NCBI RefSeq assembly: GCF_001194135.2
Contig: NC_068988.1
Span: forward strand, 84,593,966-84,657,965
DNA length: 64,000 nt
Source of the DNA: Octopus bimaculoides
Taxonomy: Eukaryota
Direction: 5' to 3'
In this document: in pieces, positions 3,364-53,050 of the stretch
Layout of the letters: the number at the start of each line of letters is the position of its first letter
How positions within the stretch are numbered: the first letter of the stretch is position 1
Position numbers and translations under genes: made by a program
The notes under the pieces: generated by a model
Databases searched by the model: none
Seen by the model: the letters and a program-made list of their open reading frames with translations, nothing else
What the model was told of the DNA's origin: nothing

Positions 3364-3486
3364 TGTTATACAGAAACATTTCATCTAACCCTTTATAAGT
3401 AGGCTGCAATATCCTTGGCACTTATGTAAATTTTTGCTACCCTGGTAACAATTTACTTTTCCCTTGTTATTTGTACACAATGAAAC

Positions 3487-3501
3487 ACACACACTCACAC
3501 A

Positions 3502-3576
<75 letters not shown>
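3487..3576. repeat. (CA)n microsatellite
   Basis: Direct reading. Confidence 0.98.
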
Positions 3577-3585
<9 letters not shown>

Positions 3586-5300: not shown

Positions 5301-5666
5301 NNNNNNNNNNNNNNNNNNNNNNNNNNNNNNNNNNNNNNNNNNNNNNNNNNNNNNNNNNNNNNNNNNNNNNNNNNNNNNNNNNNNNNNNNNNNNNNNNNNN
5401 NNNNNNNNNNNNNNNNNNNNNNNNNNNNNNNNNNNNNNNNNNNNNNNNNNNNNNNNNNNNNNNNNNNNNNNNNNNNNNNNNNNNNNNNNNNNNNNNNNNN
5501 NNNNNNNNNNNNNNNNNNNNNNNNNNNNNNNNNNNNNNNNNNNNNNNNNNNNNNNNNNNNNNNNNNNNNNNNNNNNNNNNNNNNNNNNNNNNNNNNNNNN
5601 NNNNNNNNNNNNNNNNNNNNNNNNNNNNNNNNNNNNNNNNNNNNNNNNNNNNNNNNNNNNNNNNNN
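5301..5666. other. Assembly gap
   Basis: N run. Other gaps at 8289-8701, 10451-11366, 22762-22919 and 43632-44066. Confidence 1.
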
Positions 5667-8110: not shown

Positions 8111-8734
8111 GTTAAAGCAGTAACAAAATTGGCTGATACATACTGTAACAACATAAATTACTACATGACTAATGTGTACTACTGCTATTCAGGTATTTGA
8201 AAAAAACCCCAAAACTAACCACCATACAGATCCATTACATATGATGTGACCTTATACATACATACATAATAAATTATATATATATATANNNNNNNNNNNN
8301 NNNNNNNNNNNNNNNNNNNNNNNNNNNNNNNNNNNNNNNNNNNNNNNNNNNNNNNNNNNNNNNNNNNNNNNNNNNNNNNNNNNNNNNNNNNNNNNNNNNN
8401 NNNNNNNNNNNNNNNNNNNNNNNNNNNNNNNNNNNNNNNNNNNNNNNNNNNNNNNNNNNNNNNNNNNNNNNNNNNNNNNNNNNNNNNNNNNNNNNNNNNN
8501 NNNNNNNNNNNNNNNNNNNNNNNNNNNNNNNNNNNNNNNNNNNNNNNNNNNNNNNNNNNNNNNNNNNNNNNNNNNNNNNNNNNNNNNNNNNNNNNNNNNN
8601 NNNNNNNNNNNNNNNNNNNNNNNNNNNNNNNNNNNNNNNNNNNNNNNNNNNNNNNNNNNNNNNNNNNNNNNNNNNNNNNNNNNNNNNNNNNNNNNNNNNN
8701 NTATAAATAAACGTTATGTATATATATATATAAA

Positions 8735-8773
<39 letters not shown>

Positions 8774-10339: not shown

Positions 10340-11366
10340 TTTATATATTTATTTGTGTATATATGAGTAAAGATATATACATGTGTATGTATATTATGTA
10401 TATATTTATTGATATGCATAAATATATATTTATATATGTGTTTGTGTGTGNNNNNNNNNNNNNNNNNNNNNNNNNNNNNNNNNNNNNNNNNNNNNNNNNN
10501 NNNNNNNNNNNNNNNNNNNNNNNNNNNNNNNNNNNNNNNNNNNNNNNNNNNNNNNNNNNNNNNNNNNNNNNNNNNNNNNNNNNNNNNNNNNNNNNNNNNN
10601 NNNNNNNNNNNNNNNNNNNNNNNNNNNNNNNNNNNNNNNNNNNNNNNNNNNNNNNNNNNNNNNNNNNNNNNNNNNNNNNNNNNNNNNNNNNNNNNNNNNN
10701 NNNNNNNNNNNNNNNNNNNNNNNNNNNNNNNNNNNNNNNNNNNNNNNNNNNNNNNNNNNNNNNNNNNNNNNNNNNNNNNNNNNNNNNNNNNNNNNNNNNN
10801 NNNNNNNNNNNNNNNNNNNNNNNNNNNNNNNNNNNNNNNNNNNNNNNNNNNNNNNNNNNNNNNNNNNNNNNNNNNNNNNNNNNNNNNNNNNNNNNNNNNN
10901 NNNNNNNNNNNNNNNNNNNNNNNNNNNNNNNNNNNNNNNNNNNNNNNNNNNNNNNNNNNNNNNNNNNNNNNNNNNNNNNNNNNNNNNNNNNNNNNNNNNN
11001 NNNNNNNNNNNNNNNNNNNNNNNNNNNNNNNNNNNNNNNNNNNNNNNNNNNNNNNNNNNNNNNNNNNNNNNNNNNNNNNNNNNNNNNNNNNNNNNNNNNN
11101 NNNNNNNNNNNNNNNNNNNNNNNNNNNNNNNNNNNNNNNNNNNNNNNNNNNNNNNNNNNNNNNNNNNNNNNNNNNNNNNNNNNNNNNNNNNNNNNNNNNN
11201 NNNNNNNNNNNNNNNNNNNNNNNNNNNNNNNNNNNNNNNNNNNNNNNNNNNNNNNNNNNNNNNNNNNNNNNNNNNNNNNNNNNNNNNNNNNNNNNNNNNN
11301 NNNNNNNNNNNNNNNNNNNNNNNNNNNNNNNNNNNNNNNNNNNNNNNNNNNNNNNNNNNNNNNNNN

Positions 11367-12361: not shown

Positions 12362-13555
12362 GTGGGTGATTAGGTAGAATTGCTAGAGCAACAGATAACA
12401 GACCTTACTGAATTTCTTTCCTTCTCTTTATGTTTCAAGTTTTCAAATCCAGTTGAAGTCAACATTCCTTTCAGAGTTGATAATATAAAGTACCACCGAA
12501 GCACTTGGTTCAAGGCAATTAATTAACACCTATCCCTAAATTTCAGGTCATGTACCTTCGTTAGAAGCAGTTATTATTAATATTATTAGAAGGCGGTGAG
12601 CTGGCAAAATGCTTAGAGGAATTTCATCTGTCCTTACACTCTGAGTTCAAATTCCACCGAGGTCGATTTTGCCTTCCATCCTGTCAGGGCCAATAAATTA
12701 AGTACCAGTGAAACACTGGGGTTAATGTAATTGACTTGTTCCCTCCCCCAAAATTTCAGGTCTTGTGCCTTTAGTAGAAAGGATTATTATATTATTATTG
12801 TGAAGAGCCAGCCAAACTGTTACTGCTCTGAACAAAATGCTTAGCAGCATTTCATCTGGCTTTACATTCAAAGTTCAAATGCTGCTGAGGTCAAGTTTGC
12901 CTTTCACACTTTTGGTATTAATAATATAAGTACCAGTTGGACACTGGGGTTGATGTAATCAACTTCCCCCTTCCACCATAGTTTCAGGCCAAGTGCCTAT
13001 AGAAAAGATTATATTATTGTTATTGTAAGGTGGCAAGCTGGTAGAATTTGCTAGCACATTGTGTAAAATACTTAGCAACATTTCTTTTGGCTCTTTATGT
13101 TCTGAGTTCAAATTTCATTGGGGTTAACTATGCTTTTCTTCTTTTTGGGGTCAATAAAATAAGTATTAGTTGAGTACTGGAGTTAATGCAATCGACTTAA
13201 CCCGCTTCCTAAAGTAACTGACCTTGTGCCAAAATTTGAAACAATTATTATTGTCAGATAAGTGATCATTTCTTTAGTAACACCATGCCCCATTTTCTTA
13301 CCCCATAGGAAAGGATTTACTTTGACTTGAGAAGAGACTATTAGTATAGATTGGCAGAATCAATAGGATATCTGACCTTACAGCATTTAGGTTATCTCCT
13401 TAAATTTTGAGTTTAAATCTTGTAAACACTGAATTTGTCTTTCATTCTCCTGGAGATCAATAAAATAATATTACAGTGAAATTGTGGAGTCAGTCTGACT
13501 ATATCACTTCTCTAAAATTTATTGCCTTGTACCCAAGTCAGAAATGATGATTATA
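12362..13555 (+). mobile_element. Head-to-tail train of about 5 tRNA-derived SINEs (family A)
   Basis: Repeated ggtgagctggca...ctgagttcaaattcc...aagtaccagt...ctggggt...gtgcc...(att)n units with A/B-box-like heads. Confidence 0.85.
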
Positions 13556-22567: not shown

Positions 22568-23310
22568 ATTCTCGCCAAATGACCATACCAGTGCAATCGT
22601 CTCTCTTGCACACCACAACTGATGCTTCTTAGGTCCAACTTTTCTCTCAAGGTACTTACACTCTGTCGAGTATGCACACTGACATTACACATCCATCAAA
22701 GCATACTGGCTTCATTCCTTGTTAGCTTACACATGTCCTCAGCAGTCACGGTCCATGTTTCNNNNNNNNNNNNNNNNNNNNNNNNNNNNNNNNNNNNNNN
22801 NNNNNNNNNNNNNNNNNNNNNNNNNNNNNNNNNNNNNNNNNNNNNNNNNNNNNNNNNNNNNNNNNNNNNNNNNNNNNNNNNNNNNNNNNNNNNNNNNNNN
22901 NNNNNNNNNNNNNNNNNNNTAGCAGCTACACTTTCAGCGCACCCTCCCCCACTACTGACTTGCTCACCTAGGTAACGGAAGCTATCAACTACTTCTAGTT
23001 TTTCTCCCTGGATTGAGACAGAAGTTGTTCTCTGCACATTTTCAGTGTTTATTGCTCCTGAGCATCTGCCACATACAAAAACTATCTTCCTAGTTAGCCT
23101 TCCTTTGATATTGCTGCACCTCTTATGTGCCCATAGCTTACACTGGGTACATCTTATAGAGTTTCTACCTACACCTTTTCTACAGATCGAGCAGGGCCAT
23201 CTACCTGAAGGGGTTTGTGTTTTGTCTACCTTCCTACTTATTAGGACTTTGGTTTTAGCCAGGTTGACTCTAAGGCCCTTCGATTGTAGTCCCTGCTTCC
23301 ACACAATATA
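22565..23310 (-). mobile_element. RTE-clade LINE fragment (RT C-terminal region with embedded PHD-like finger), spans an N-gap
   Basis: GLRVNLAKTKV, CSIC..CTQC..H..C..CGRC, LEVVDSFRYLG, ETWT, ERRLHWYGHLARM. Confidence 0.92.
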
Positions 23311-27559: not shown

Positions 27560-28159
27560 GTGGTCATTGCTGTTTTTACTGCTGATACTTATGACTGCTC
27601 CAGCATTGGCCATGGCTTACTGGGTGAAACCAGTAAGAGTGCTTAAGTGACTGAATTGACTGGATACCAGAAGGCCAACCACAATGTACAGAAATGCAGA
27701 GAGGGACACCCTTGATAGATTAAGCTTGTGACCACTGAGCAGGTTCCACTGTACATGGCACCAATACCCTTGTGGATGACTGTTAAGTAGTGAGGTCAAC
27801 TTCATTGAAAGCTTTTGCATGATCCAAATTCATCAGACCTCACCAAAGCCAGGGTTGTTATCCACCCCTCTTATCTGCAATATATATCATCAGGTGGAAA
27901 TTGTCATGGACAGATTTACCAGGAATCATATGGGTTTGTATGTTTTTGATGGCAAGTGCCAACCTGTTGATGAGTGTCTTGGTGAAAACCTTGAACTTTG
28001 CATTCAGTAGAGTTATGCGTCTGAAATTATTAAAGATTTCCCCACTTTTTGTATCTTCTCTCTCAACAGTACTGCTATTCCCTAACTCACAGAACTTGGA
28101 ATCTTCCTGTTCTGCTTTCGGTTGCAGTAGATATGAGTGAAAACTTCACTGAACTTTCT
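27560..28159 (-). mobile_element. L1/Tx1-like LINE RT remnant, left half (split by Gypsy insertion)
   Basis: Minus strand: NNFRRITLLNAKFKVFTKTLINRLA, IPGKSVHDNFHL, NLDHAKAFNEVD. Confidence 0.75.
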
Positions 28160-28164
28160 GTCAT

Positions 28165-28413
28165 TGTTATAAACCAGTTCAAAGAAGGCTTTTATTCAAA
28201 CTTTATTTCTGCTTGCTGTCTAATCCGTTAATCACAGCTGTCCAATGATTAAGACACATTGTTTTATATCAGGTAAAGACAGTATCCATCTATCAACGTC
28301 ATTTGACACTATGCCACATTTTCATACTCAATACAAAATAAGATATCTGTGTTCTTATCCATTATTTACTATTGTAGAAAGAAATTAATGATGGGATATT
28401 AAAATTCATAACA
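28165..28413 (-). repeat. 3' LTR of Gypsy element
   Basis: Direct repeat of 31920-32168, about 27 mismatches in 249 by hand count. Preceded on the minus strand by purine-rich AGCAGGGAAAAC (PPT-like). Confidence 0.95.
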
Positions 28414-31400
28414 GTTTTCCCTGCTGAGTGGAAAGTTTGTCATGATACATTCAAAACATAGAGTCCTTTAGATAAAAAGGGGTCTTGATAATTCATCCTG
28501 ATCTCATTTTTCTCGTCTCTTTTCGTCCTTGAATAGTTGGCATTTTGTTAACCGTATTATTCTCATTCAGGTACTCTTCACAATTTTTGCTAATCTGCTC
28601 ATGTGAGATTGTGTGTCAACACCGTATCTATTTGTCTGTTTCCAAATTGTACGTGTGCAAAGTTGGAAGGAATCATCTCCAACAATTTCGCATTTTCAGC
28701 AAGTGGATCCTCCTTATTTCTGAGATGTTGACGATGCAGTATTGTGCTTCCAATATTCTGGAGGAACTCAGGAAGATTGTTTCCCCACTGTTGATGATTA
28801 TGAAAATTTAAACATTTGCTCATGTGGGGTTGTGTTGGCAACTGTACTGAGGAGTCCTTTCATGGCTGATAGTACCATGGGAAGGACTGTCAACCATTGT
28901 CCTTTATCTAGTTGTAGTGACTAAGTGCTAGATTTATGGTCTTCATGAGGGTACTGTTGGTCCTTTCACATTGGCCATTGCCTTGAGGTCCATAGAGAGA
29001 TGTTCTAGTTTTTATTGTCCCGTTACTGTGAAGGAAGTCCAGGAGCTTCTTATTATCAAATTGGGTTCCTGTGTCAGAGTGGATACAACTTGGTGATCCA
29101 AACAATGAAATTAGGTTGGGAAATTACTGTTTTGGTACTCATGTCTTTGCATGGGTATGCGAATAGGTACCTTGAGTACCCATCAACTATTACCAATAAG
29201 TAGCAGTATTGTGTGGTTGATGGCAGGGGACCAACAAAGTCGATGGACAGGTGCTCTCAAGGTCTTGATGCCTATATTAATTGGCCCATAACTGGTTTGT
29301 GGAAGTGGGGTTTGAGTTTGTTGCATGTAAAGCGAGTGTCATTTTGTGGATTTTGTTGAGGGAGAACGACAGGTTTCATACTTTACAGTAGTGAAGTAGG
29401 CAGGTCACCCCTGGGTGGCACAGTTGTTGGTGAAGGGTTATTAGTATTGTAGTGTTTCTTGTTGTTGCGCATCTTGATAGTATGTCTGCTGTTTTGAGTT
29501 CCTGCTCTATAAGAGATTGTATAATTTATGTCTGAAACGTCCAAGTGCCAGCGTATAAGTTTTTCATTTTTGATTTTTGATGTCCCTTAGTTATTGAAGA
29601 TCATCACCACCGAGCATTGGTCGGTGACGATGTTGCAGTATGGGGAAATGTATTAGGTGGCACCATTTGCAGTAACATTCTATGCTTTCCCATGCTTCTC
29701 TCTCAACAGTGGATTGGTGCTTTTCTGTTTTTGAAAGAGACCTTGAATAGAAGGCCACTGGCCTTCCTTGTTGTGATAGCGTCCCTCCCAAGGCTAGGTC
29801 GGAAGCATCTGTTTCGTTGGTAAGTGGTATTCCAGGTTGTGGAATGGCAAGTATGGCATTTACCAATGCAGTCTTTAGAGATGTGATTGCTGTTTTTGCT
29901 TCTCTGGCAGTCTTGCTTTGTTGATATTCTCTCTGGCTCTTGTAAATGGAATTGTGAGTATGGAGCACTTAGGTATCCACTTTGCATAATATGCAAAAAC
30001 GCCTATTATTTGATTTAGTTCTCTCAATGTTCTTGGTTCTGGCATATCTTGTAGAGCTTGATACCTTTTAGGGTCATGTTTTTTGGTTGAATTTCCAATA
30101 ATATGTTCAAGGAAGCTGATTTGCTTCTGAGAGAATTGACTCTTGATGGTCATTCCAGATGTTTCGGCTGCCTGGATAAATTTCCTGAGGTTATCGTCAT
30201 TTCATGATGATCTTTGCCAACTATGATGATGTCATCTAGATAAGCAAAGGTTTTTTGAAGATTGTTTCTTTTTATGAATTCATCCATGATACACTGGAAA
30301 ATTGCTGTGGCATTGATACAACCAGATGGGAGACATTTAAATTTGTACAGTCTTCCCCTGCTTTGAACACTGTCAGTTTATAGTCTATGGCTAAGAGTTC
30401 CACCGGGTGAAATGCAGCTGCCATATCTGTGTTGCTGAAAATCTTGTTTGCTGCTACTTCATTTAGAAGATCATTGATCTGGGGGTAGGGTAGGCATCCA
30501 ATTGTGTGTAGATATGTATAGTGTTCGAGTAGTCGATCACCAGTCTTTTCTTCCTTCCATTAGATGTCACGAAGCATTGAACTCACCAGGGGCTACAGCT
30601 TTTCTGAATTATGTCCTCTGAAAGTAACCTGTCTATTTCGTGCTTAATAAAATCTGTGTCTCTAGGATTGCGTCTTGAAATTGTTGTAATTGGTTTGAGC
30701 TTAGAGGTCTTAATGTCAGTAAGTAGTTCATATGTGGTGCATTTTAGGCTTGACATGGACATGCAGAATGACACAGGTTTGAATGTGCCCTTGAAGACAA
30801 TTGTAACTGCTGAGTGTTGACTGAGGATATCGATTCTGATGATGACCAGAGCTACAAGGTGGCCGGCCACAAGGAAATTAGTGTTATATGCGTTATTTCC
30901 CAGTTGTTGTTTGCTACTGAATTTGCCTTTAATTTCCAGTGCTGTGTTGTTGGCCAAGCTAACTTTTTCTGCGCAGGTATGATCATATTGTAATTCCCAA
31001 ACTGCAAGAAGATTTGCTTCTATAAATGTCCTCGTCAGAACCCATGTCAAGAAGGGCTTGTGTATTGTTGTCCTTAATTTTAATGGGTACCAGCTGTCCT
31101 GTACCATTTGTTACTGCTAAAATGATGGATGATAAGGTCCCATCACTGTTTTCCTCTGAGTTGCTCTTGGGCTCTGTGATAGCTGCTGTTTTAGGGAAGT
31201 TTTGTTTCTTGGTGGCTTTTTTGAGAGGCAGACTTTCTCCCAGTGGCCTTTCTCCTGACACCTTCTGCAAGTGGAGTTTCTCGCCAGGCATTGATTTTTT
31301 TTTTTTTTTTTTCATGGATGTCTCCACCACACCAAAAGCATGCTGATTTAGCAGCTGTAAAATGGGGTAGTTGATCGATACCAACTGAACCTTGTGATAA

Positions 31401-31919
31401 GTTGCAAGTGTCTTCAATGGCCACCTCCATGGTTTGAGCAAGCTTATTGAGTGTTTCTAAGCTGTTGTCTGATGATTCGAGAAGTCTTTGTCTGATTGAT
31501 GGTGATTGAAGCCCAGCCACAAAGGCATCACCAATTAGAATTTCTCAGTAATGATCTGCCGTTAGAGCTTGAATTTTACACTTCTTGGCTTGCCATAAAT
31601 TCTTCTATAGACTTGTTTTCTTTTTGTTTTCGAGTTCGTAGCTTATGGTGCATCATTATGTTTGAACCTTTCTTTATGAACTTTGAGTCCAGGCGTTCTA
31701 TTGCTTTTGCGAAGGTTTCAGATTCTTTGGCGATAGGTAGGTCCTTGCTCTGCAGAGGACTAAGAGTATCTCCAGTTTAAATTCATCTGGAACTTTTGCT
31801 TATGCAATGTAGATGTGTAGCATCTGTTTCCAGTAAATATAATCTTCCTCGGTTGGGTCATCTAGAAGGGTCTCCTCAAGCATTTTGGCATCTATTTAGA
31901 ATCAAGTTTGAATAAAATT

Positions 31920-32168
31920 TGTCATAAACCAGTTCATAGAAGACTTTTATTCAAACTTTATTTCTGCTTGCTGTCTAATCTGTTAATCACCGCTGTCCAA
32001 CAATTAAGATGTGTTGTCTAATATTAGGTAAAGACAGTATCCATCTATCAACGTCATTTGACACTATGCTGCATTTTCATACTCAATATAAAATAAGATA
32101 TCTATATTTTTATCTAATATTTACTATTGTAGAAAGGAATTAATGATAGGATACTATAATTAATAACA
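31920..32168 (-). repeat. 5' LTR of Gypsy element
   Basis: Direct repeat of 28165-28413; contains minus-strand AATAAA near its 3' end. Confidence 0.95.
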
Positions 32169-32173
32169 GTCAT

Positions 32174-43601: not shown

Positions 43602-44066
43602 AAGCAAATTTAAAATGAAAAAAGCAAATAANNNNNNNNNNNNNNNNNNNNNNNNNNNNNNNNNNNNNNNNNNNNNNNNNNNNNNNNNNNNNNNNNNNNN
43701 NNNNNNNNNNNNNNNNNNNNNNNNNNNNNNNNNNNNNNNNNNNNNNNNNNNNNNNNNNNNNNNNNNNNNNNNNNNNNNNNNNNNNNNNNNNNNNNNNNNN
43801 NNNNNNNNNNNNNNNNNNNNNNNNNNNNNNNNNNNNNNNNNNNNNNNNNNNNNNNNNNNNNNNNNNNNNNNNNNNNNNNNNNNNNNNNNNNNNNNNNNNN
43901 NNNNNNNNNNNNNNNNNNNNNNNNNNNNNNNNNNNNNNNNNNNNNNNNNNNNNNNNNNNNNNNNNNNNNNNNNNNNNNNNNNNNNNNNNNNNNNNNNNNN
44001 NNNNNNNNNNNNNNNNNNNNNNNNNNNNNNNNNNNNNNNNNNNNNNNNNNNNNNNNNNNNNNNNNN

Positions 44067-52584: not shown

Positions 52585-53050
52585 TCATCATCATCATCAT
52601 CCTCATTGTTTAACGTCCGCTTTCCATGCTAGCATGGGTTGGACGATTTGACTGAGGACTGGTGAAACCAGATGGCAACACCAAGCTCCAATCTAATTTG
52701 GCAGAGTTTCTACAGCTGGATGCCCTTCCTAACGCCAACCACTCAGAGAGTGTAGTGGGTGCTCTTACGTGTCACCCGCACGAAGGCCAGTCAGGCGGTA
52801 CTGGCAACGGCCACGCTCGAAATGGTGTCTTTTATGTGCCACCCGCACAAGAGCCAGTCCAGGGGCACTGGCAACGATCTCGCTCGAAGACCCTACGAAG
52901 GCCAGTCAGGCGGTACTGGCAACGGCCACGCTCAAAATGGTGTCTTTTATGTGCCACCCGCACAAGAGCCAGTCCAGGGGCACTGGCAACGATCTCACTT
53001 GGCTTGCCGGGTCTTCTCACGCACAGCACATTTCCAAAGGTCTCGGTCAG
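52585..53050 (-). mobile_element. Young RTE 3' end (ORF end DRDLWKCAVREKTRQAK*, 3' UTR, (GAT)n tail) with 115-bp internal tandem duplication
   Basis: CpG-rich; repeat units start at 52780 and 52895. Confidence 0.9.

Follow-up and report, generated by a model that had tools for sequence, protein, structure and literature searches.

The question raised by this locus is how a long terminal repeat (LTR) retroelement with no recognisable transfer RNA (tRNA)-type primer-binding site (PBS) starts its reverse transcription. The stretch analysed here, referred to below as the window, comprises 64,000 nucleotides (nt) of the Octopus bimaculoides genome (NCBI RefSeq assembly GCF_001194135.2, contig NC_068988.1, positions 84,593,966 to 84,657,965 of the forward strand), and a 4,004-bp Ty3/Gypsy LTR element lies on its minus strand at 28165-32168. 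To our knowledge, self-priming is the only experimentally tested alternative to tRNA priming among LTR retroelements, and self-priming by Gypsy elements has so far been linked to the chromoviral Tf1/sushi group. An earlier sequence-only reading of the locus had proposed Tf1-like priming, with the PBS paired to the LTR of the element itself and not to a tRNA. The conserved and covarying pairing reported below, together with the lack of any tRNA-type PBS in the relatives, supports this proposal. We conclude, with good confidence, that a 14-nt inverted repeat at the LTR boundary is probably the self-primer/PBS pair of a dead, compact (4.0 kb) Ty3/Gypsy element without a chromodomain, and that the clade of this element, judged from the relatives retrieved, is widespread in animals.

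Complementarity between the LTR and the primer-binding site

On the sense strand, the 5' LTR ends in ...AAGTTTGAATAAAAgtcttctatgaactggtttatgaCA, with its last A at 31920, followed by AA (31919-31918) and then by TTTTATTCAAACTT (31917-31904). The latter matches LTR bases 31958-31945 exactly as their reverse complement, the two arms being 27 nt apart, and the pairing reaches 18 nt when one mismatch is allowed (31900-31917 against 31945-31962). Re-reading of the sequence confirmed the layout and coordinates described earlier (LTR end, 2-nt gap, 14-nt complement and 27-nt loop), and the complementarity in the window is real. The 14-mer occurs three times in the window, at 28190-28203, 31904-31917 and 31945-31958; 0.21 matches are expected at no more than one mismatch, and three were reached in 0 of 100 shuffles. 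When the 25 nt after the LTR were compared with the last 140 nt of the LTR, a 14-nt complement appeared in 0 of 5000 shuffles. The minimum-free-energy RNA fold also joins both arms (-14.9 kcal/mol, z = -3.7).

No TGG was found in the 40 nt after the 5' LTR, so a TGG-type PBS is absent there, and ARAGORN detected no tRNA gene within the window. This agrees with the sequence-only reading, which had noted the lack of a TGG-initiated PBS, and which had also pointed to a loop much smaller than that of Tf1; the loop measures 27 nt in the window copy and 24-88 nt in the relatives. Its remark that the 14-mer is the same in both LTRs is correct as an observation, but it counts for little as evidence, since the chance probability of such identity at 11% divergence is about 0.2 (0.893^14).

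The pairing in relatives of the element

A protein search with the window 174-aa open reading frame (ORF) of protease (PR) and reverse transcriptase (RT) gave no match, and a stitched RT-RNase H query returned distant relatives only, the best of them at 40-44% identity; a Hydra vulgaris protein reached 58% along part of the query. Hydra is the nearest named RT relative of the window element. As the window's own family was absent from the protein collection, the comparison was made with more distant relatives and with three multi-copy families from other hosts. About 90 related loci were retrieved, including loci of Hydra vulgaris, Biomphalaria glabrata and Clonorchis sinensis and many metagenome contigs. 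The integrase of one of them, L001, is 50-66% identical to proteins of cnidarians (Hydra, Nematostella, Xenia) and molluscs (Biomphalaria, Argonauta), and flatworm, rotifer, crinoid, insect and stingray proteins fall in the same range; an integrase alignment of 13 proteins (A4) was used to draw 80 further loci from metagenome contigs. The integrase in this alignment, including a C-terminal part of about 100 residues (GPVLLKRHVR.SKYDPLVDEV...), is unusually conserved, at 50-66% identity from cnidarians to stingray, and its conservation across phyla is far above the RT-RNase H conservation between the window element and the clade.

The clearest relative is L001, an intact 4.2-kb element with intact ORFs, 286-nt LTRs that are 100% identical and the target-site duplication GGAAG. 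One nt past its LTR stands TTTAACCAACAAGAA, a perfect 15-nt complement of LTR bases 44 nt before the LTR end, and the gag ATG comes next. Six further loci (L002, L003, L004, L007, L008 and L009) have the same layout with an 11-15 nt complement whose sequence is different each time, and the layout recurs in Hydra vulgaris (L006, 14-nt complement). Complements were also found in Biomphalaria glabrata (L010, OX365774.1; 16 nt, near-identical LTRs, target-site duplication GATAG) and in Clonorchis sinensis (L091, 25 nt). The complement in the relatives is perfect, lies 1-3 nt after the CA of the LTR and is distinct in sequence in each of them, and the first nine elements each beat their shuffles (P <= 0.004). 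L005, in which neither an LTR pair nor a hairpin was found, was excluded. In several families the gag start codon directly adjoins the PBS or is overlapped by it, e.g., TTTTAACAGCTTAGAATCATGG (L012-L016, L044 and L079 of family A; L004; L028; L042), and where it overlaps the ATG the same bases would serve both priming and translation start. The Hydra locus carries TA-rich simple-repeat arrays at 8451-8764, inside the 3' part of the element, and at 12968-13149, downstream of it; these arrays account for its LTR spacing of 6 kb, against about 3.9 kb in relatives.

The pairing is general in the clade. Of the loci with a credible LTR pair, nearly all proved to have the complement when run through an LTR-pair pipeline, with a length of 11-19 nt and a position within a base or two of the blast-estimated LTR end. 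A set independent of the pairing was then formed from loci chosen solely by the gag N-terminal motif M..L[KR]P.R[LF]..DP (n = 29), and in 28 of these 29 a perfect complement of at least 11 nt (11-19 nt) to the upstream LTR stands right after ...ACA-A; the exception, L021, has a PBS with a 3-nt deletion. A CA..TGG site was found at none of the 29 loci. As a negative control, an unrelated larger LTR element around the self-priming candidate in L016 has a TGG-type PBS, and its complement to the LTR is only 6 nt. This control element lies at 1823-2185, with a second copy about 7.2 kb downstream, and its conventional PBS reads TGGTGGCAGCG....

Some candidate structures among the loci were set aside. 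Palindromes returned by a blind hairpin search in L030, L036, L049 and L080 were dismissed, as they lack the ACA-A-TTTA context. Repeats of 103-127 nt with 100% identity at or near both ends of several JGI contigs (L029, L036, L074 and others) were rejected as LTRs and are probably assembly overlaps. Exact end repeats with circularly permuted gene order (e.g., L055) indicate LTR-mediated circular closure by short-read assemblers. A search for contigs whose ends would suit a transcript assembly, beginning at the arm or stopping a little way past it, gave no convincing example.

The arms, which share the form ...GTTG-NN-TAAA with GCC or ACC coming next, are positional homologues, and they were compared in an ungapped MAFFT alignment of 21 families (A5). 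Watson-Crick cells amount to 96%; both sides have changed in 10 of the 14 pairs (68 cells), one-sided variation is seen in no pair, and the two G:U cells both fall in the outermost pairs. The covariation score was reached in 0 of 500 shuffles, and controls with a slid partner were 27-49% paired. A 7-family alignment, in which the window row was re-anchored by dropping one inner A:T pair, agrees with this result, and L002 and L003, which have the two most divergent arms, were described apart from the MAFFT alignment. The sequence-only reading had suggested that genomic copies be tested for a pairing that is kept or covaries, and in the relatives it is indeed kept at the same position with compensatory change of sequence.

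A finer comparison, which that reading had also called for, was made within three multi-copy families of one host assembly (WLWD contigs). In family B, whose copies are about 99% identical, L026 and L027 have the arm CAAGTTGATTAAA and the PBS TTTAATCAACTTG, and L020 has CAAGTTTATTAAA in both LTRs (G>T) and TTTAATAAACTTG in the PBS (the matching C>A), a concerted change at three sites, i.e., arm, arm and PBS. Two other copies depart from the pairing, L018 with one PBS mismatch and L021 with the PBS deletion mentioned above. L033 and L036 show another compensatory change, from C:G to T:A. The complement of family A spans 19 nt in two copies, and 13 nt, a mismatch and 5 nt in four others.

Proposed priming and its alternatives

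From the observed pairing, position, conservation and covariation, we infer a start of transcription, a cut and a priming step as follows. Transcription would begin within the LTR, around the 5' end of the arm (~31958-31962), and the first ~14 nt of the RNA would fold back over a short loop made of the repeated (R) and unique 5' (U5) regions of the LTR (24-88 nt across the family) to pair with the PBS 2 nt past the LTR. By analogy with Tf1, in which the PBS anneals to the first 11 nt of the mRNA and RNase H cleavage falls between nt 11 and 12 (PMC7175516), the element's RNase H would cut the duplex at its loop-proximal end, beside the invariant TAAA (followed by GCC/ACC in most relatives), and free a 3'-OH. 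The invariant TAAA with GCC/ACC at the predicted cut site is suggestive of such a step. From this primer, RT would copy the spacer, U5 and what remains of R before transfer to the 3' R. Plus-strand synthesis would copy the primer back into the PBS, and the PBS would in this way track the LTR arm automatically. Copying of this kind would by itself yield both the near lack of G:U pairs and one-sided changes and the three-site change, in the absence of any selection.

In 17 of 24 entries a poly(A)-type hexamer forms the end of the arm (AATAAA in 8, ATTAAA in 6 and AGTAAA in 2, plus GATAAA and TTTAAA), and in four of the remaining seven AATAAA or ATTAAA lies in the loop. The window copy has AATAAA within the arm and no further signal in the loop, and this AATAAA is likely, from its sequence and place, to be the poly(A) signal. 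A hexamer in or just after the arm would put the arm within R, which is consistent with a start of transcription at the arm. A more speculative role for the arm/PBS duplex would be to mask the poly(A) signal in its 5' copy. A small hairpin (RCCUW...WAGGY) begins at the first base after the arm in about 14 of the 24 entries and is weak in the window (-1.6 kcal/mol). It recalls the further stem-loop that Tf1 requires, U5-IR-like and beside the primer/PBS duplex (titles of Lin & Levin 1997/1998, cited in PMC4600332).

The best surviving rival, which we nevertheless consider unlikely, is that the arm/PBS duplex is only a regulatory or structural hairpin, serving to hide the promoter-proximal poly(A) signal or to act in packaging or dimerisation, with another primer in use. 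The frequency with which a poly(A)-type hexamer ends the arm would fit this explanation, as would the fact that the hairpin is the minimum-free-energy fold, and HIV-1, which uses a poly(A) hairpin, offers a parallel. However, no alternative PBS candidate was found, the complement sits exactly at the PBS position, 1-3 nt past the LTR, and TGG occurs there in none of the 29 gag-defined loci. In four entries the top-ranked hexamer lies in the loop and not in the stem. A helix kept for its structure should moreover tolerate G:U pairs and one-sided changes, whereas only the two outermost G:U cells and no one-sided pair were observed, and the three-site change in the 99%-identical family is predicted by primer copying but unlikely as two independent selected mutations. 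It is because G:U pairs and one-sided changes are nearly absent, and because arm, arm and PBS change in concert in near-identical copies, that we favour priming over a purely structural hairpin.

Judged from the comparison of families, it is quite improbable that a small RNA of the host, be it a tRNA half, an internal stretch of a tRNA or some other species, primes at the PBS and that the match to the LTR is secondary. In favour of this reading are the invariance of the innermost TTTA and the recurrence of TTTATTCAAC in several families, and Copia-type elements do use tRNA halves (PMC6317226). Beyond its first 4 nt, however, the PBS varies by family, e.g., TTTAACAGCTTA, TTTATTACGCGT, TTTACTTGTCTA and TTTAACTAGCTA, each of them perfect to its own LTR, so that a single conserved host RNA cannot fit all, and the CCA-complementary TGG is missing. 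A chance match in the window, which the AT-rich sequence and the age of the copy might invite, is already refuted by the 14-nt complement found in 0 of 5000 shuffles and by 28 of 29 independent relatives, which show the feature at this position too.

Several points weigh against self-priming itself and temper our confidence in it. All evidence comes from sequence, from which the start, the cleavage and the primer are each predicted. The innermost four pairs, TAAA/TTTA, are invariant and hence silent on pairing, and the 21 aligned families were selected for showing a complement, which inflates the percentage paired, although not the covariation of aligned columns. The overlap of arm and poly(A) signal gives part of the arm's conservation another cause. 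Upstream of the arm in the window there is no clear TATA or Inr motif, and if R starts at the arm, the window element would, once its primer had been removed, keep at most about 25 nt of R for strand transfer. The window copy itself is decayed, with 11% LTR divergence and broken genes, and the sole vertebrate locus retrieved (L092, from a stingray) is 5'-truncated and uninformative. Given that the window copy is dead, the proposed mechanism would apply to the family while it was active. As a wider and decidedly tentative proposal, Tf1-like self-priming might be how a pan-metazoan, chromodomain-less Gypsy clade (cnidarians, molluscs, flatworms and probably others) replicates, with one RNA segment acting as the start of R, the poly(A) signal and the RT primer.

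Anatomy of the element and its place among retroelements

The features of the window copy are collected in Table 1. The repeat search returned a 252-nt direct repeat (28164-28415 and 31919-32170, 89% identity) that included 3 chance flanking matches, and the LTR bounds were refined by the perfect 5-bp target duplication, giving LTRs of the form TGTTAT...ACA. The 3.5-kb interior holds gag, PR, RT, RNase H and integrase (IN) in Gypsy order, spread over all three frames and with many stops, and the intact relative L001 has its domains in this order too. With TG..CA LTRs, a target duplication, a polypurine tract and this domain order, the element is a member of Ty3/Gypsy (Metaviridae), and with 11% LTR divergence and every gene broken the window copy is an old, dead fossil insertion. 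The best match of P0001 in the PDB is the Ty3 RT 4ol8 (E = 1.7e-41), and PDB searches with gag gave zinc-knuckle matches only.

Table 1. Features of the Ty3/Gypsy element, in window coordinates.
Feature	Position	Strand	Remarks
5' LTR	31920..32168	(-)	249 nt, TGTTATTA...TTTATGACA; direct repeat with 28165-28413, 89% identity; bounds from TG..CA and ATGAC
3' LTR	28165..28413	(-)	249 nt; ends ...TTTATAACA, then ATGAC
Target-site duplication ATGAC, 5' copy	32169..32173	(-)	Direct reading
Target-site duplication ATGAC, 3' copy	28160..28164	(-)	Direct reading
Candidate self-primer, LTR arm AAGTTTGAATAAAA	31945..31958	(-)	AATAAA inside; positional homologue of the arms in 21 aligned families
14-mer copy in 3' LTR	28190..28203	(-)	
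Remainder of R/U5 within LTR	31920..31944	(-)	25 nt; with the AA spacer, a 27-nt loop
AA spacer, LTR to PBS	31918..31919	(-)	Single A in most relatives
Candidate primer-binding site TTTTATTCAAACTT	31904..31917	(-)	Complement of 31945-31958
gag remnant	31228..31883	(-)	ATG at 31883 opens MLEETLLDDPTEEDYIYW..., then broken frame; tblastn with L001 gag and Hydra P0015
PR-RT-RNase H remnant	29708..31153	(-)	Three frames, stops; RT_RNaseH_2 8.7e-19
Integrase remnant (zinc-binding and DDE core)	28602..29634	(-)	Frameshifted; no chromodomain seen
Polypurine tract AGCAGGGAAAAC	28414..28425	(-)	Immediately 5' of the 3' LTR; similar tracts in relatives

Some further observations concern the copy and its surroundings. 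A homopolymer of 18 A on the sense strand (31295-31312), in the zinc-knuckle region of gag, reads KKKKKK and probably expanded in this dead copy after its insertion. Immediately 3' of the element, on the minus strand at 27800-28160, a fragment of a LINE-type non-LTR reverse transcriptase was recognised by eye (...GLMNLDHAKAFNE...), and on this sequence an older LINE may have been the insertion site of the Gypsy copy. Runs of N at five places (158-916 nt; 5301-5666, 8289-8701, 10451-11366, 22762-22919 and 43632-44066) are assembly gaps, which makes the window a draft scaffold, and they produce false long ORFs in six frames and a false dip in GC at 8-12 kb. An (AC)46 microsatellite lies at 3485-3577 and a 115-nt unit repeated 1.9 times at 99% identity at 52780-52996; an Rfam scan of the window gave no match.

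Among known systems, the closest are Tf1 and Tf2 of S. pombe and Tj1 of S. japonicus, which have an LTR-complementary PBS beside the 5' LTR and no tRNA primer (PMC7175516, PMC4600332, PMC5341516). The complement of the present clade (11-25 nt) is found at the same place next to the 5' LTR, and Tj1 and others were assigned to self-priming by the same sequence criterion (PMC4600332, PMC5006619, PMC6934838). In contrast to Tf1 and Tf2, which are chromoviruses with a chromodomain integrase, the clade has no chromodomain and is known here from sequence alone. It further differs from the three yeast elements in its animal hosts, which include cnidarians, molluscs and flatworms, in its short loop of 24-88 nt, in an arm that mostly ends in a poly(A) hexamer and in the invariant TAAA/TTTA at the inner end of the duplex. 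The chromodomain PF00385 was found neither in the L001 integrase nor in any of the 13 clade integrases, nor in the precomputed Pfam annotation of the 120 homologues listed, so that the earlier suggestion of a possibly separate lineage, made from the missing chromodomain, still holds.

Self-priming has also been predicted for Maggy, Skippy, Cft-1, Boty, Grasshopper, Afut1, Tcn1, the vertebrate sushi group, the plant Tcn1 clade and the TAR lineage of Ty1/copia (PMC6934838, PMC6317226, PMC4600332), likewise from the lack of a TGG PBS and the presence of an LTR complement after the LTR. The Gypsy members of this list are, however, all fungal, plant or vertebrate chromoviruses, whereas the present clade occurs in protostomes and cnidarians. 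Chromoviruses have been reported missing from protostomes, echinoderms and urochordates (PMC2774666), and Hydra, Biomphalaria and Clonorchis, in which the clade was verified with its hairpin, are outside the reported chromovirus host range of fungi, some plants and vertebrates. In the GalEa Copia elements of marine invertebrates, which have no recognisable tRNA PBS, a 'conserved hairpin site' has been suggested for priming (PMC6934838), but these belong to a different superfamily, and their hairpin is confined to the internal region, with no pairing between the LTR and the PBS position.

The Mag lineage (SURL, Steamer, MchSLE1) resembles the clade in being compact (Mag 4.7-5 kb), with short LTRs (Mag ~175-190 bp), pan-metazoan and without a chromodomain (PMC3601003, PMC6238403). 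The LTR termini of Mag C are TGTNATRT...AYANAACA and those of Mag A TGTTRKR...YAYAACA (PMC3601003 Table 3); those of the clade, TGTAATGA...TATAACA (L001), TGTGATGA...CACAACA (L009) and TGTTATTA...TATGACA (window), are Mag-like, but such short motifs are weak evidence. Steamer has a tRNA-Leu type PBS, TGGTGTCAGAAG (PMC8905726), and MchSLE1 a tRNA-Asn PBS (PMC11046912), whereas no conventional tRNA PBS occurs in the loci studied here. The Steamer PBS was not found beside any clade 5' LTR, and the single match to TGGTGTCAG among the loci, at L012:1363, is outside the element. The clade, which is set apart here by its features, may lie inside Mag, be sister to the chromoviruses or be new. PBSs were not analysed in a large survey of mollusc LTR elements, and in the full-text literature, with notes in Repbase, Dfam and GyDB lying outside the search, no mention of self-priming in animal Gypsy elements other than chromoviruses came to light.

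As regards the window itself, the result is a modest one, since it concerns one dead fossil insertion. For the family, the sequence comparison supports a self-priming architecture of the Tf1 type in a pan-metazoan clade of Gypsy elements that lack a chromodomain, that is, a known mechanism in a new setting, with a short loop and a primer segment that usually ends in a poly(A) signal. It also identifies natural copies with identical or near-identical LTRs, L001 and the Biomphalaria element L010, and it marks elements that are misjudged by LTR annotation pipelines depending on tRNA-PBS matches. The architecture bears on whether hairpin priming is ancestral to LTR elements, an idea raised in PMC3601003, and if the reading is true, tRNA-independent priming would be no peculiarity of chromoviruses but a trait that LTR retroelements either inherited from their ancestors or evolved more than once. 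In endogenous retroviruses, 3'-tRNA fragments directed at the PBS have been described as a means of control (PMC7472051), and self-priming predicts escape from such control. A large group of animal elements would then be invisible both to host defence based on tRNA fragments and to annotation based on tRNAs.

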